Sequence record: PP793740.1
DNA length: 64,000 bases
Strand: one strand, 5' to 3'
This document shows, piece by piece, positions 1,197-58,955 of the stretch. Made by a program: the position numbers and the translations under genes. Each line of letters starts with the position of its first letter. Position 1 is the first letter of the stretch. The notes under the pieces were generated by a model that searched no databases, was not told the origin of the DNA, and saw only the letters and a list, made by a program, of their open reading frames with translations.

Positions 1197-1480
1197 AATA
1201 ATAATATTTATAACTATTTAGATAATTATACTGGCACGATGATATTATGTAAGAGTACTATAATAAAGTATTCTTAAATCTATCCACTAAACACACTCGG
1301 TGGTAGAACTTATTATAGAGTGTGTCTAAATGCCAGGGGTTTGCCACCCCTGGTTATATTCATTGTTACTATTATAAATTCATTTATAGATGAGAAAAGG
1401 TTTTATCACCTTTTCAAAATCGGCATTTAATTCCAGTTAAAAAACTGAATCTATGCTACATTGTAATAAAGGAGTCTATT

Positions 1481-1993
1481 ATGACTAACTCTAATCAGTT
1501 TGTAAGAACTATTGTAAAGTACCAAGATATCCTAGATGCTTTAATTCAAAAAACGAATGAGAACTGGGTTAATTATCGATCTAATTCTATTGGTCATATT
1601 GTTATTCGTGAATACAGGACTGTTGGATTATTTGTAGGTCGGCAATGTGGTAGTACAACTGCATTGATTGAGTTTGCTAATCGTCATCCTGGCGAATGTC
1701 TAGCTGTATTTGTAGAAGATAAAATTAAACAGGTTGTACTGGCTAAGTTCCAGAATGCTAAAGATAATATTGTTTCTTGTTTAATTACACACCAACTCCG
1801 TAAATATATTCATCAACCTGAGGAATCATCTATTCAAAAAGATATTAAAGAAGAATTAATATCGTCTGTAAAATATATTCTTGTTGACAATGCCTCATTT
1901 AATCTGAACCTACGCGGTATCACTGATAAAGAATTTAACCAGTGGGTTGCAGATACTTTTGGTACAGAGGTAATGGTGGTTCGTTTTAGTTAG
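1481..1993 (+). CDS. hypothetical protein with degenerate P-loop NTPase motifs
   Basis: GRQCGSTT (Walker A-like) and ILVDNA (Walker B-like); RBS AAGGAG. Confidence 0.6.
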   Translation: MTNSNQFVRTIVKYQDILDALIQKTNENWVNYRSNSIGHIVIREYRTVGLFVGRQCGSTTALIEFANRHPGECLAVFVEDKIKQVVLAKFQNAKDNIVSCLITHQLRKYIHQPEESSIQKDIKEELISSVKYILVDNASFNLNLRGITDKEFNQWVADTFGTEVMVVRFS

Positions 1994-4698: not shown

Positions 4699-5109
4699 AT
4701 GAGTAATGAAACTAACTATCTAGGTTATGAATGGAAAACAGATATAACTACTTCAAATCTTAATAGAGTGGTTGATTTATATACACTTGAATTAACATGG
4801 TTAAAAGAAGATTTTAATGATACTCTTTTTATAAAGTCTTATAAAGTGCTAGAGGGTCTATTAGAGGAACCGTCTAGGGCAATCCATGATGATACAGTAA
4901 CCGTTCAAGATCAATTAGATGAATTAAATACTGTTTTTAAATTAGTATTTGGAAAAGATAATGACGTAGAGTTATCAATTAATAATGATTCAATTATTGT
5001 GATCGGTGCTACAGATGCAACTAAAGAAAAATTAGAAGCAGAGGTGCGTGAGTTTGCATATAGAAAATCATTAATTGATGAACGTTATCCAGACATTGTA
5101 ACGGATTAA
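4699..5109 (+). CDS. hypothetical protein
   Basis: ORF track; RBS AAGGAG. Confidence 0.8.
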   Translation: MSNETNYLGYEWKTDITTSNLNRVVDLYTLELTWLKEDFNDTLFIKSYKVLEGLLEEPSRAIHDDTVTVQDQLDELNTVFKLVFGKDNDVELSINNDSIIVIGATDATKEKLEAEVREFAYRKSLIDERYPDIVTD

Positions 5110-5189
5110 AATACTTACAGCTATCTAGTATGTAACTAGGCGGATTGCCATTTGTAAATTATCTATTTAATCAAACTGAGGAAATACTA

Positions 5190-5579
5190 ATGAAACAATT
5201 CTTTCAACTACTTCTAAGCCTACTTTTCAAACTACCGGTTCTATCATATTTTGCTGAGAAGAAACGACTAGAGAAAGAGAAAAAGGAAGAAGAAAAGCGT
5301 CAGCAAGAACAACGTCAAAAAGAACTACTTGACGAACAGCGTCGCGAACAAGAAGATCATTATCGAAAGACGGCTTACGATCGCCTAGCAAAACTTATTC
5401 ATACTCGGTGGTATGATGAGTTTAATGCATATGAAAAGAAACTAGTTGATCTTGCCGTGTCTACTGGTAAAGCAGTTAGTGTTAAGTATGGTAAAGTTAC
5501 TAAGATGCAACACCCTCATCAATTTAAACTACTTAATGATTGGCTGGATGATATTCCAGTAGAAGATTTTTCTAAGTGA
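5190..5579 (+). CDS. hypothetical protein, N-terminal hydrophobic segment plus charged coiled coil
   Basis: start moved to MKQFF (GAGGA RBS); EKKRLEKEKKEEEKRQQEQRQKE helix. Confidence 0.75.
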   Translation: MKQFFQLLLSLLFKLPVLSYFAEKKRLEKEKKEEEKRQQEQRQKELLDEQRREQEDHYRKTAYDRLAKLIHTRWYDEFNAYEKKLVDLAVSTGKAVSVKYGKVTKMQHPHQFKLLNDWLDDIPVEDFSK

Positions 5580-5605
5580 GTTTAAATAAAAAAATAAAGA
5601 CATAT

Positions 5606-5627
5606 CCCCTCTCCATACGGAGAGGGG
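5606..5627. terminator. bidirectional terminator at convergence of gene blocks
   Basis: CCCCTCTCC-ATAC-GGAGAGGGG flanked by A- and T-rich tracts. Confidence 0.85.
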
Positions 5628-5639
5628 TTTATGCCGTAA

Positions 5640-6320
5640 TTATACACTTACTTTGATAAGATTTTTAATATCAGTAAAATGGGTATATGTTGCCTTTTTA
5701 TCTTTGTGAACCAGTAAGCAACAGGTGCCTTCATTTACTGTATTGGTTTGTTTTAATGGGATATTTAAAGCATATTCAAACAGATCATCCATCCAGTTAA
5801 ATACCATGAACTTACTGATAAGGACATGATCGAAATCAATTAATCCAATAAACGAATCGATCTCAAATTGATAATACTCTACAACCATTTTAGACCATTC
5901 TTTGTTTATTGCCTCAATGACATTAGGATTATTTATTTTATTAAATAACTCAGTGCGTTCCTTAGTAGGTAAACTGAGGTAATAATTAATATTACTCCTA
6001 ACGATATCTGGATTAGTGATATCAATTTTTTCTGGTAAGTTATATTTACTATCTACATAATTCTTAGTTTCTGGCGTCATTCTCCAGCAACCATAATCAG
6101 CAGTAGTACTTGATAGATCTACTCTAGCCTCTACTACTTTAGAAAATACATTTACATATAAATTAACAGATTCACATATATCAGGTCTGATTGAATTAAA
6201 GTTTAAACTTTTAATAAGACCCCTAACTGGTCGAGTACCAATTAGACAATGCAATTCAAGCTTAACATTTTCCTCTTTAGCCATCTTAAATATATCAGCA
6301 AAACTGAGCTTTTCTGCCAT
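5640..6320 (-). CDS. hypothetical protein
   Basis: ORF track; packed operon. Confidence 0.8.
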   Translation of the reverse strand: MAEKLSFADIFKMAKEENVKLELHCLIGTRPVRGLIKSLNFNSIRPDICESVNLYVNVFSKVVEARVDLSSTTADYGCWRMTPETKNYVDSKYNLPEKIDITNPDIVRSNINYYLSLPTKERTELFNKINNPNVIEAINKEWSKMVVEYYQFEIDSFIGLIDFDHVLISKFMVFNWMDDLFEYALNIPLKQTNTVNEGTCCLLVHKDKKATYTHFTDIKNLIKVSV

Positions 6321-6488: not shown

Positions 6489-7019
6489 TTAGACGGTGTA
6501 TAAACCCTCAGTATTACATGTTGTTATGATATTGTAAAGACGATGCCAATAGCGATCATACGTATTTTTACGTTTGTAGCTATTGGTGCGGATAATTAGA
6601 TTGGCGACCCAGTGATTTTTATCAATGGTCTCATGTAGATGCCCGAAATAAACCCCCAGTTCAATTTCGAATGGGATCTTACACTCACGCCCCTTACACA
6701 TTGCTTCACGCAATAAACGCATTACAGAATTCTCTGCATTGGTATCTTGAAATAAAATACTAATGTATCCAGGGCTACCACCAGTTTCTTCATCAACATG
6801 ACCTGAACAGCAATAAATAGTTGCAATATTGGTGAATTGGTTAAACCATTTAATCAATGGTCTACATGCTTCATCAATAAGATCTTCATATTCAGGTTTA
6901 TACATTACTTTAACAGTATCATCTGCCCGTTGTTTCACGTGATGAAAATATTGTTCCCAATTTACATTAGTGTAATATAGCATATCCATATTAGAATCAC
7001 TCATACAAATCAACCCCAT
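6489..7019 (-). CDS. TYW3/Taw3-like protein
   Basis: IDEACRPLIKWFNQFTNIATIYCCSGH resembles the TYW3 DxxIxxLLxxIN...TTSSCSGR signature. Confidence 0.45.
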   Translation of the reverse strand: MGLICMSDSNMDMLYYTNVNWEQYFHHVKQRADDTVKVMYKPEYEDLIDEACRPLIKWFNQFTNIATIYCCSGHVDEETGGSPGYISILFQDTNAENSVMRLLREAMCKGRECKIPFEIELGVYFGHLHETIDKNHWVANLIIRTNSYKRKNTYDRYWHRLYNIITTCNTEGLYTV

Positions 7020-7741
7020 ATGTTATTGGCATATTCGCGGTCATTGAAAATGCAGGTAAGATCCATCCGCTTTTGAATACGCGCCAGAATCCATTTTAGT
7101 TGTTTAGTTGATAGTTCCTGATTTTGCTTGTACTCACCTGTAGCATGGATGTAATAATCAAATTTACGACTTACAGTAGTAGTATGTGCACATGCAATAG
7201 CAAATGCTTCAAGTGCAGTTAGTTTGGTTGATCCATTATCATTACAATTAGGGATAAACTCAAGTACACTATTAACTGCATCTACACCACTACCTAAATG
7301 AGCCCAATCTTTCTTGGTGATCTCGATACTCATATCTTTAAGAATAACTGTATATATGTCACCATTCTCCATAGTGAACATCATAGAAGTATTACCATTA
7401 AACAACCTGCGTTCTATGACTGGCATGATATTTACTTCAACTTTAAACCAGTCAGCTAAATCAACACCTGCGGTAAGGGCATTCAATAGATCATAAACAT
7501 TATCTATAGTTCCAGCAAAAGCCATAGTTTTAACACGTTTGCCTTGCCAAGTAACAGTCGGATGAAAAATTATCTTGTGGCAATCATTGTAATATACATC
7601 TACACCTTCAGCTTTAGCAGTTAGATCAATATAACCGTTATCTAATACTGGAAGTCGCCCAATGCTATCAGTTGCATTATTCCGCTCAATTAATAGGCAG
7701 TCTGCAATCATGACTTTACCATCATTTACGATATATGTCAT
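7010..7741 (-). CDS. HslV/proteasome-beta-like Ntn-hydrolase
   Basis: RBS places start at M-T-Y-I-V-N-D-G...IADC; later KI, MAFAG, HLGSG, ALEAFAIA motifs. Confidence 0.6.
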   Translation of the reverse strand: MTYIVNDGKVMIADCLLIERNNATDSIGRLPVLDNGYIDLTAKAEGVDVYYNDCHKIIFHPTVTWQGKRVKTMAFAGTIDNVYDLLNALTAGVDLADWFKVEVNIMPVIERRLFNGNTSMMFTMENGDIYTVILKDMSIEITKKDWAHLGSGVDAVNSVLEFIPNCNDNGSTKLTALEAFAIACAHTTTVSRKFDYYIHATGEYKQNQELSTKQLKWILARIQKRMDLTCIFNDREYANNIWG

Positions 7742-7784
7742 TTTCACTCCTTATAATAAAATAAATAGGCTTAAGCGAAATAAA

Positions 7785-7804
7785 GCCCTCCCCGAAGGGA
7801 GGGC
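7785..7804 (-). terminator. terminator, CCCTCCC-CGAA-GGGAGGG family
   Basis: perfect 8-bp stem; on the minus strand a TTCG loop and TTTATTT tail. Confidence 0.85.
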
Positions 7805-7817
7805 ATTATCAATAGGT

Positions 7818-7881
7818 GGGATCTCGGCGGCACCTTCATTTGCGGACGGGAACGCTGAAGGGAGATAGTCCGGGAGATCCC
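7818..7881. ncRNA. candidate structured RNA, strand uncertain
   Basis: 40/64 G+C; nested stems GGGATCTC/GAGATCCC, CCTTCA/TGAAGG, GCG/CGC and alternative CGGAC/GTCCG. Confidence 0.5.
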
Positions 7882-7907
7882 GATTTGGATATTCTTTACA
7901 TATGGTA

Positions 7908-8288
7908 TTACTGCAAGTATTTGTTCCCCGCAGTATAATCACCATTGATCCAATTTTTGATTACAACACTGATCCCTTCATTTTCTTTAACGGTAACCCC
8001 CAACTCAAGATCGATTGATTGATAAGCTACAGCAGCCAGTGTTAACCGAAGATAAACGGATCCATCTTTTTCGATATCGTAGGATACTACGAACCCGTCT
8101 TGTAGATTTTGTAGCTGGAATGTATTAGCATGTTGTGGGTGGAGACGATCCATATTGTACTCGACGACATCTAGTAGATATTGCCGAGCATCAGCAGCAT
8201 TATCAAATCCGAGATCGCACAGACCGATCGGATAGCGAGCTTGCGTGCATGTAACTTTCATAGATACTACACGATGTTGTTTGCACAT
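7908..8288 (-). CDS. hypothetical protein
   Basis: ORF track; bounded by terminators. Confidence 0.7.
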   Translation of the reverse strand: MCKQHRVVSMKVTCTQARYPIGLCDLGFDNAADARQYLLDVVEYNMDRLHPQHANTFQLQNLQDGFVVSYDIEKDGSVYLRLTLAAVAYQSIDLELGVTVKENEGISVVIKNWINGDYTAGNKYLQ

Positions 8289-8313
8289 TATATTTTCCTC
8301 TTAGATGTCAAAA

Positions 8314-8336
8314 ACCCTCCCCGATCAGGGGAGGGT
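8314..8336 (-). terminator. terminator
   Basis: ACCCTCCCC-GATCA-GGGGAGGGT. Confidence 0.8.
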
Positions 8337-8429
8337 ATCTCATTGGTACTTCTTCAGCAAAACTGAAACTAAGATAAAAGAGCAATCGTAAAGGAACTAC
8401 ATAGAATAGTGTATTTCTTTTACTATTTT

Positions 8430-58738: not shown

Positions 58739-58752
58739 TATAATGAATGGCA

Positions 58753-58779
58753 TAAAGGAGCCCACCAGGGGCTCCTTTA
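58753..58779. terminator. symmetric terminator hairpin
   Basis: TAAAGGAGCCC-ACCAG-GGGCTCCTTTA; no CDS ends near it. Confidence 0.75.
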
Positions 58780-58790
58780 ATGTAATAGGT

Positions 58791-58955
58791 CCGACCCCTA
58801 TCTAGAGGTCGGTGAGTAGCAAGGCACCGTAGTTGGGGTTCGTGTCGTTCCTGACGATACTTTAGTACCCCGGTTTATTTACGACTGGATCACCCCCTTA
58901 AAGTGCAGTGCGTTTTACGCAAACTGCCTTGCTCTATATCATTGCACTGTGCGTA
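58791..58955. ncRNA. candidate pseudoknotted structured RNA
   Basis: 80/160 G+C over 58791-58950, no ORF; stems AGCAAGGCA/TGCCTTGCT, AGTGCAGTG/CATTGCACT, AGTTGGGGT/ACCCCGGTT, GTGTCGT/ACGATAC, CCGACC/GGTCGG. Confidence 0.55.

Follow-up and report, generated by a model that had tools for sequence, protein, structure and literature searches.

A structured RNA between PHIKZ288 and PHIKZ289 as the probable core of a small RNA family in phiKZ-like jumbo phages of Pseudomonas

Between two genes of a Pseudomonas aeruginosa jumbo phage that is phiKZ-like lies a GC-rich element of 64 nucleotides (nt) that is transcribed as part of a short RNA and is the subject of this article. The window analysed comprises 64,000 nt of sequence record PP793740.1, and positions refer to it unless phiKZ coordinates are stated; its interval 7400-8400 is 100% identical to phage vB_PaM_W10-2 and 99.5% identical to phiKZ. 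The element (7818-7881; approximately 263189-263252 on the plus strand of phiKZ) is located between PHIKZ288 and PHIKZ289, and the genes around it are all encoded on the minus strand (Table 1). As originally predicted, it is rich in G+C (40/64, 62.5%, versus 34.8% window-wide) and lies 26 nt beyond the PHIKZ288 stop codon (7908-7910) and 13 nt ahead of a terminator hairpin. The reading favored here, to which a probability of about 65% is assigned, is that the element forms the folded core of a primary small RNA of about 120 nt which extends from its own promoter to the terminator T119, belongs to a family conserved in structure and, as the best guess on function, acts as a stand-alone noncoding RNA (ncRNA). 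The original prediction of a discrete, structured small RNA on the minus strand with real stems has held, but not its proposals on the origin of the RNA, on ribozyme and CCA-end resemblances and on a related element at 58791.

The stems proposed for the element, i.e., a perfect closing stem of 8 base pairs (bp; GGGATCTC/GAGATCCC) with inner CCTTCA/TGAAGG and GCG/CGC stems, make up the minimum-free-energy (MFE) fold on both strands. On the minus strand, which is the RNA strand, this fold has -23.9 kcal/mol (z = -3.07, 0/200 shuffles as stable), and on the plus strand -27 kcal/mol (z = -2.4); the pattern of the closing stem occurs a single time in the window, where 0 occurrences are expected by chance. 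A competing helix between CGGAC (7843-47) and GTCCG (7868-72) had also been proposed, as well as two possible partners for the closing strand owing to the repetition of GGGAGAT. The sequences are indeed present, GGGAGAT at 7860 and at 7872, but neither the competing helix nor the choice of partners is conserved in relatives. The whole transcript folds as the hairpin, a free 13-nt linker and the terminator, without competing pairing.

The RNA spans window positions 7898/7899 to 7778 on the minus strand. The box upstream of its start, AAATACTTG, resembles the phiKZ middle-promoter motif, described as AAanTTACc and centred near -24 (PMC4666361), and is followed by a TATG initiator; the non-virion RNA polymerase of phiKZ initiates at the G of T-3ATG+1 (PMC4666361). 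Expression was assessed from a single Nanopore complementary DNA (cDNA) run (X14) as assembled contigs, depth being the summed contig depth; a RIP-seq run (X24) contained no raw reads of this region and is uninformative about it. By this measure, depth is ~1800-2300 over 7792-7873 versus ~60 over PHIKZ288 and ~26 downstream of the terminator, so that it lies roughly 40-fold above the neighbouring gene. One contig terminates exactly at 7899, and loose ends carrying poly(A) tails at 7777/7778 mark the 3' end of the RNA. In the tables of Putzeys et al., promoter P130, of class 'middle', has its start at 263172, equivalent to window 7898 (PMC10914365; bioRxiv 10.1101/2023.10.13.562163), and TU198 (263172-263292, 120 nt) contains no gene and ends at terminator T119, position 263292 being window 7778 (PMC10914365). 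The start site was called in cap-enriched data (ONT-cappable-seq), and the interval 263172-263292 was entered as an unvalidated ncRNA candidate of PHIKZ289 "5'UTR-derived", i.e., derived from the 5' untranslated region (UTR) (PMC10914365). With a mapped start of its own and an end at T119, the RNA is therefore classed as 5'UTR-derived, by premature termination before PHIKZ289, and not as a processed 3'UTR product. It has the features of the 5'UTR-derived small RNAs of phiKZ, namely a start of its own, immediately preceded by a phage promoter motif, and a species of less than 250 nt, generated by termination in the 5'UTR, which outnumbers read-through (~2000 versus 26, a rough measure).

The original prediction had placed the origin of the element in the 3'UTR of the PHIKZ288 mRNA, from which a small RNA or a stability/processing element would be cut. 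This origin is now regarded as quite improbable, since the predominant species is a primary transcript that begins at a separate start site under a middle promoter of its own. The PHIKZ288 mRNA (TU197, 262671-263292), transcribed from the early promoter P129, likewise stops at T119 (PMC10914365); the element that it traverses therefore also belongs, physically, to that 3'UTR. A minor poly(A)-tailed 3' end, weaker and thinly supported by two Nanopore contigs, was observed at ~7813/7814, directly after the hairpin plus ACCU(A); it could represent a processed or paused species of ~86 nt and hints at some processing or pausing. Against an excised product, a distance of just 17-18 nt separates the hairpin from the upstream start site that was called in cap-enriched data and has its cognate promoter motif. 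Moreover, relatives lacking a PHIKZ288 homologue retain the promoter box and TATG, and the 3' end is already protected by the terminator hairpin.

A second abundant short RNA is found on the minus strand at 8310-8399, just upstream of PHIKZ288, with a contig depth of ~5000-5800 and a 3' end marked by poly(A) at 8311. This RNA has been published as the 5'UTR-derived ncRNA candidate of PHIKZ288 (phiKZ 262671-262760), delimited by the early promoter P129 and terminator T118 (PMC10914365).

Table 1. Features of the PHIKZ288-PHIKZ289 intergenic RNA and of the long forms found in related phages (window positions, unless a locus name precedes the coordinates).
Feature	Position	Strand	Basis or remark
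PHIKZ288, upstream gene	7908..8288	-	phiKZ annotation
Upstream promoter box AAATACTTG	7914..7922	-	About -16 to -24 from the start; inside the final PHIKZ288 codons
TATG initiator and transcription start (G 7899/T 7898)	7898..7902; TATG at 7902-7899	-	Motif, contig end, published start
5' leader, single-stranded	7882..7897	-	Unpaired in whole-transcript fold; ACGAAC-type leader conserved in most other members
Element, unbranched four-helix hairpin	7818-7881	-	MFE folds, covariation in 13 sequences, independent homologue folds, covariance model
P1	7874-7881 with 7818-7825	-	Stable 8-bp helix
P2	7870-7872 with 7828-7830	-	
Internal loop ACUAUCUC, 8 nt	7862-7869	-	
P3	7856-7861 with 7833-7838	-	
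P4	7853-7855 with 7842-7844	-	
Apical loop UUCCCGUC	7845-7852	-	
Linker ACCUAUUGAUAAU, pyrimidine-rich then A/U-rich, conserved	7805..7817	-	CCACCUAUU shared unchanged by 8 short-form members
Intrinsic terminator T119 (hairpin 7785-7804, U-tract 7778-7784)	7778..7804	-	Matches phiKZ terminator consensus; poly(A) ends; published site
PHIKZ289, downstream gene reached by read-through	7010..7741	-	phiKZ annotation
Long-form 3' domains	L063:1594-1875 (PhiPA3), L070:1590-1885 (PA1C), L071:1603-1890 (Viktualia), L072:1602-1885 (201phi2-1), L062:1215-1500	-	

Relative to the T2P clade, the segment 7818-7913 is 97% identical at the DNA level, whereas the flanking genes are 70-85% identical, and the two substitutions inside the element both fall at unpaired positions; judged from such comparisons of sequence, the element is under selection. 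A recognisably similar element with different stem sequences precedes the PHIKZ289 homologue in RVTF4 (74% protein identity) and in Psa21 (39%), and a motif scan of IMG/VR yielded, amid chance matches, additional copies in PhiPA3 and in uncultivated jumbo contigs of four kinds. A covariance model built from nine sequences (R1) has exactly one match in the window (93 bits, E = 2e-25) and one match per whole genome in phiKZ, RVTF4, Psa21, PhiPA3, a 307-kb uncultivated genome, D6, PA1C, Viktualia and 201phi2-1 (E from 2e-24 to 3e-6), as well as a match in contig L081. The family comprises about 10 distinct Pseudomonas jumbo phages, including T2P and several uncultivated contigs, and extends over several genera. 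No match to R1 was obtained in a T4-like Aeromonas phage, nor did a second model (R2) detect anything in five phiKZ-like jumbo phages of Burkholderia, Erwinia, Klebsiella, Vibrio and Proteus; as far as tested, the family appears to be confined to Pseudomonas phages of the phiKZ-like group. None of the 120 listed matches to a sequence-motif pattern in a metagenome scan was a member according to R1, all being chance matches, and this loose scan has no bearing on absence. Locus searches using the PHIKZ289 family added a single new locus. A repeat or mobile element was also considered and discarded: the additional places found by blastn in each genome correspond to the shared terminator motif, and the element itself is single-copy.

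The comparison across related phages which had been suggested as a check on the prediction shows an element that is present and structurally conserved in relatives, with stems that covary and base pairs that are kept through compensatory changes, as in a structured RNA family. In the 13-sequence covariance-model alignment, which was fitted to the model and hence leans towards the modelled structure, 97.6% of the cells are paired and 13 of the 16 pairs have changed on both sides; when the partners are slid by 1-3 columns pairing falls to 39-48%. Among 500 shuffles, none reached the observed values on four of five measures, and 45 did so on the remaining one, further pair types. An independent, plain MAFFT alignment contains 10 compensated pairs out of 16. 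Single-sequence folds recover the same four-helix architecture in 12 of the 13 members, among which P4, an apical stem of 3-5 bp, has seven different sequences. Compensatory changes are also seen in the terminator stem of T2P.

These data bear on the possibility that the locus is a short protein-coding gene, or else a GC-rich hairpin that arose by chance and has no function, which is hardly tenable. An open reading frame (ORF) of 64 amino acids (aa) does exist at 7751-7945, and a hypothetical protein is annotated over the RNA and terminator in PhiPizzaParty (L004:1472-1666, WNV50345.1) and KEN49 (L003:1453-1635, KEN49_CDS0069). However, the ORF begins within PHIKZ288 in another frame, continues through the terminator and has no PHROG match, and distant homologues preserve base pairs by double substitutions, not the reading frame. 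The island of 97% conservation amid less conserved flanks argues against both the ORF and the chance hairpin, as does the occurrence of one copy in every Pseudomonas jumbo phage tested. The annotations over the small RNA are very probably over-calls.

A search of Rfam, proposed as a check on the original prediction, did not assign the element to any known family (gathering score for the window; E<=10 for 7700-8000 and for the loci of relatives), and returned only terminator-driven noise (Phe_leader, STnc and similar), with nothing among large RNAs either. This search also concerns the self-cleaving ribozyme of the hepatitis delta virus (HDV) type and the tRNA-like element with a CCA-like end, identities that are both extremely improbable. 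The ribozyme was suggested by the apical hairpin GCG-UUCCCGUC-CGC, which may resemble the P3/L3 hairpin of CPEB3, and the CCA-like end by the ACCU that follows P1. Yet no ribozyme family, HDV, CPEB3 and drz models included, and no tRNA family was detected at E<=10 in the 301-nt search of 7700-8000, no HDV, CPEB3 or drz model reached the gathering score in the window, and ARAGORN and the Rfam tRNA model, which detect only the three true tRNAs of the window, found nothing at the site. The fold supported by covariation is an unbranched hairpin and not the nested double pseudoknot (P1, P1.1, P2, P3, P4) of HDV ribozymes: the 3' strand of the putative 'P3' leads into the pairing partner of the helix before it and not into the P1 strand, from which it is separated by a 16-nt stretch that pairs with the helix outside 'P3', and a P2 partner for the HDV-type topology is absent downstream. 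The likeness to HDV-like (CPEB3-type) ribozymes is limited to a 3-bp GCG/CGC hairpin with a U/C-rich loop, and the sequence of this stem differs in every lineage. The tail is also variable, with ACUU in KEN49 and PhiPA3, GCCUAA in 201phi2-1, and CCCU as well. As for the element at 58791, thought to share the stem arrangement, it has no covariance-model match and is not a member of the family; the region 58780-58940 (minus strand) is GC-rich and structured and adjoins a terminator-like hairpin at ~58750-58775.

The family's invariant parts are unpaired: the 5' internal loop contains GGA..AUCUC(C/U)C and the apical loop CCCGUC, and the third motif is G(G/A)UGCC. A pyrimidine-rich tail, which reads CCACCUAUU in the short forms, is conserved as well, and 11 of the 13 members have, at the same spacing before the RNA, a box that is A-rich plus TAC(T/C)T and the initiator TAT(G/A). 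A pseudoknot between leader and loop (GACG with CGUC) was considered and rejected as a family feature, being possible in Psa21-type members and absent from phiKZ.

Two forms of the RNA are found. In the short form (~120 nt), which occurs in phiKZ, T2P, RVTF4, Psa21, D6 and three uncultivated types, the terminator follows 12-14 nt after the hairpin. In the long form (~400 nt; PA1C, PhiPA3, Viktualia, 201phi2-1, contig L081 and the 307-kb contig) ~250-300 extra nt precede the terminator. This additional 3' domain has conserved blocks (CUUUCGG ... CCGAAGC, GAAGUUAC, AGCUGGCCAGC and UUAAACC) and a canonical terminator at its end, and contains no conserved ORF; the long forms matched no Rfam family, and the structure obtained for the 3' domain with MAFFT/RNAalifold was unconvincing. 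The phiKZ-like phage KEN49 (PP456877) carries a unique non-coding stretch of ~290 nt between the hairpin tail and the terminator (L003 ~1205-1495, minus strand), at a point equivalent to window 7805/7806, with no other match in the phage collection and none in Rfam. A significant match to PhiPA3, at the beginning of the 3' domain, is confined to the first ~36 nt of this stretch (z = 6.4, 0/300 shuffles); the remainder has no detectable homology, and a sequence hidden Markov model of the 3' domain missed both KEN49 and the G003 contig. Either the stretch is a 3' domain that was retained or regained, or it is an insertion of foreign origin.

The genes that surround the RNA also fit a function other than that of a stand-alone molecule. 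The RNA is located upstream of a PHIKZ289-family gene in all genomes that were checked, and in at least 9 of the 13 genomes this gene follows it, either directly or after an ORF encoding a membrane protein of 62-77 aa, and the upstream genes vary, the PHIKZ288 family being found in phiKZ and T2P-type phages only. The small hydrophobic ORF is conserved between the terminator and the PHIKZ289-like gene in RVTF4 (L005:974-1207), Psa21 (L006:1019-1207), D6 and uncultivated contigs, and is absent in phiKZ and T2P. PHIKZ289 shows weak signals of an HslV/proteasome-type peptidase (PHROG 1040, E = 1.9e-6; PDB 1g3i, E = 0.067, the sole match), has no Pfam family and yields nothing related to RNA. Proteins of this family start with MTYIV.., and PHIKZ289 may be an N-terminal-threonine hydrolase.

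Such an arrangement would be that of a cis-acting leader, in which the domain, on contact with a protein, with a metabolite or with the phage RNA polymerase itself, would set how much of the transcription from P130 continues beyond T119 to the PHIKZ289 operon, as an attenuator or in a riboswitch-like or put-like manner, the abundant short RNA being a by-product. This is the main rival explanation, possible though doubtful. In at least 9 of the 13 genomes the RNA directly precedes the PHIKZ289-family gene, whether or not the membrane ORF intervenes, despite differing upstream genes; leaders classically have the order seen here, from promoter through structured RNA, terminator and ribosome-binding site to gene; and conserved nucleotides borne by loops on covarying stems, as in aptamers and protein-binding leaders, are compatible with a ligand- or factor-binding domain. 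Moreover, two strict read-through modes have been described at phiKZ terminators of this kind (Putzeys et al., PMC10914365). On the other hand, a free linker of 13 nt lies between the stable helix P1 and the terminator, and no mutually exclusive pairing between a sensing domain and the terminator, or between terminator and antiterminator, was seen in the whole-transcript fold or, by eye, across eight short forms, which speaks against a classical riboswitch. An antiterminator pairing of AUCUCCC with the 3' strand of the terminator works in phiKZ only and fails in RVTF4 and Psa21. Terminator sequences vary among phages without a matching change in the element, and in the long forms ~300 nt of other RNA separate the domain from the terminator. 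In Viktualia the PHIKZ289-like gene is located ~1.3 kb further downstream with other genes between, and 201phi2-1 probably has intervening genes likewise. Finally, termination looks efficient by contig depth, and an antiterminator role is therefore not obvious.

A stand-alone small RNA is favored because of its abundance, its efficient, independent terminator and the presence of the same 5' domain in forms of 120 and 400 nt. Among the functional alternatives it is the best guess, with a chance that falls somewhat short of even, and it and the cis-acting leader are not mutually exclusive. According to the proposed mechanism, the covarying helices would serve as a scaffold that presents the invariant C-rich loops to a partner, either a G-rich RNA site (e.g., Shine-Dalgarno-like GGGAG) or a phage or host protein, and the A/U linker, terminator hairpin and U-tail would constitute a typical 3' module of small RNAs. 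The PHIKZ289 mRNA would begin with this structure whenever transcription occasionally reads through T119. The RNA has a terminator hairpin with a U-tail and a conserved single-stranded seed, as do trans-acting, base-pairing small RNAs.

Several observations weigh against the stand-alone reading. No target or partner was found, the complements of the loops (GGGAGAT, AATAGGTGG) not being enriched within the 64-kb window, and the placement upstream of a PHIKZ289-family gene fits a cis-acting leader at least equally well. Contig depth from one assembled Nanopore run is a poor measure of abundance, biased towards 3' ends, and a similar peak is found at the neighbouring terminator; the published evidence for the transcript is a table entry without Northern validation. 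The structural argument is built on only ~10 distinct sequences and, in part, on an alignment that leans towards the structure modelled.

The RNA can be compared with several known systems. [quoted passage not shown] Another jumbo-phage small RNA derived from a 5'UTR, sRNA005 of 201phi2-1, which is the gp182-leader small RNA in phiKZ, is conserved in position and fold across phiKZ, 201phi2-1, EL and PhiPA3, but it belongs to another locus, upstream of the tail gene gp182/gp277, and is unrelated in sequence (PMC11512511). In both phiKZ and 201phi2-1 the covariance model matches only the locus on the PHIKZ289 side and not that of sRNA005.

Less close likenesses exist outside this group of phages. 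The put RNAs of phage HK022, which belong to the cis-acting RNAs of processive antitermination, are promoter-proximal RNAs of ~65-70 nt with conserved loops on covarying stems ahead of terminators; they consist of two hairpins, have the host RNA polymerase as their target and suppress termination. In the present case, by contrast, the terminator is efficient, the polymerase is a non-canonical phage enzyme and no similarity of sequence or model was found in Rfam. In the staphylococcal small RNAs of the RsaE type, UCCC or other C-rich loops pair with Shine-Dalgarno regions. The invariant C-rich motifs of the element (AUCUCCC, UCCCGUC and CCACCU) are similarly exposed in loops and followed by a terminator hairpin, but there is no homology and the resemblance is confined to the possible mode of action.

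The transcript has already been published as an unvalidated table entry and hence is not a new RNA. The structure supported by covariation, the invariant loops, the single-copy family across genera, the conserved promoter and synteny and the dimorphism of short and long forms appear to be new: no paper on this family was found in the literature on structured RNAs of jumbo phages, nor anything on the locus in a transposon-mutagenesis preprint and the literature on 'gp289'.

A more specific role, which is considered unlikely, would be that of a dedicated riboregulator of nucleus-forming jumbo phages embodied in the conserved 5' domain. In one version, the RNA may bind a phage factor, or else the phage's non-canonical RNA polymerase, and set termination and read-through at the PHIKZ289 operon; in the other, it may be an abundant decoy that modulates translation in infected cells through its C-rich, anti-Shine-Dalgarno-like loops. 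Under either version, a second function may come from the variable 3' domain of long forms. If either version were true, a new class of phage regulatory RNA would have been found.

phiKZ is the model of nucleus-forming jumbo phages and relies on RNA polymerases of its own to transcribe its genome. Its RNA biology has hardly been explored: existing catalogues contain dozens of short promoter-proximal transcripts, with functional evidence for almost none. The family described here could join Rfam, and very probably spurious 'hypothetical protein' annotations in several GenBank records are corrected by it. It bears the hallmarks of a functional RNA, i.e., purifying selection on loops, compensatory changes in stems, a single copy, its own conserved promoter and synteny across several genera, and therefore constitutes a concrete and testable candidate for the study of regulatory RNAs in jumbo phages.

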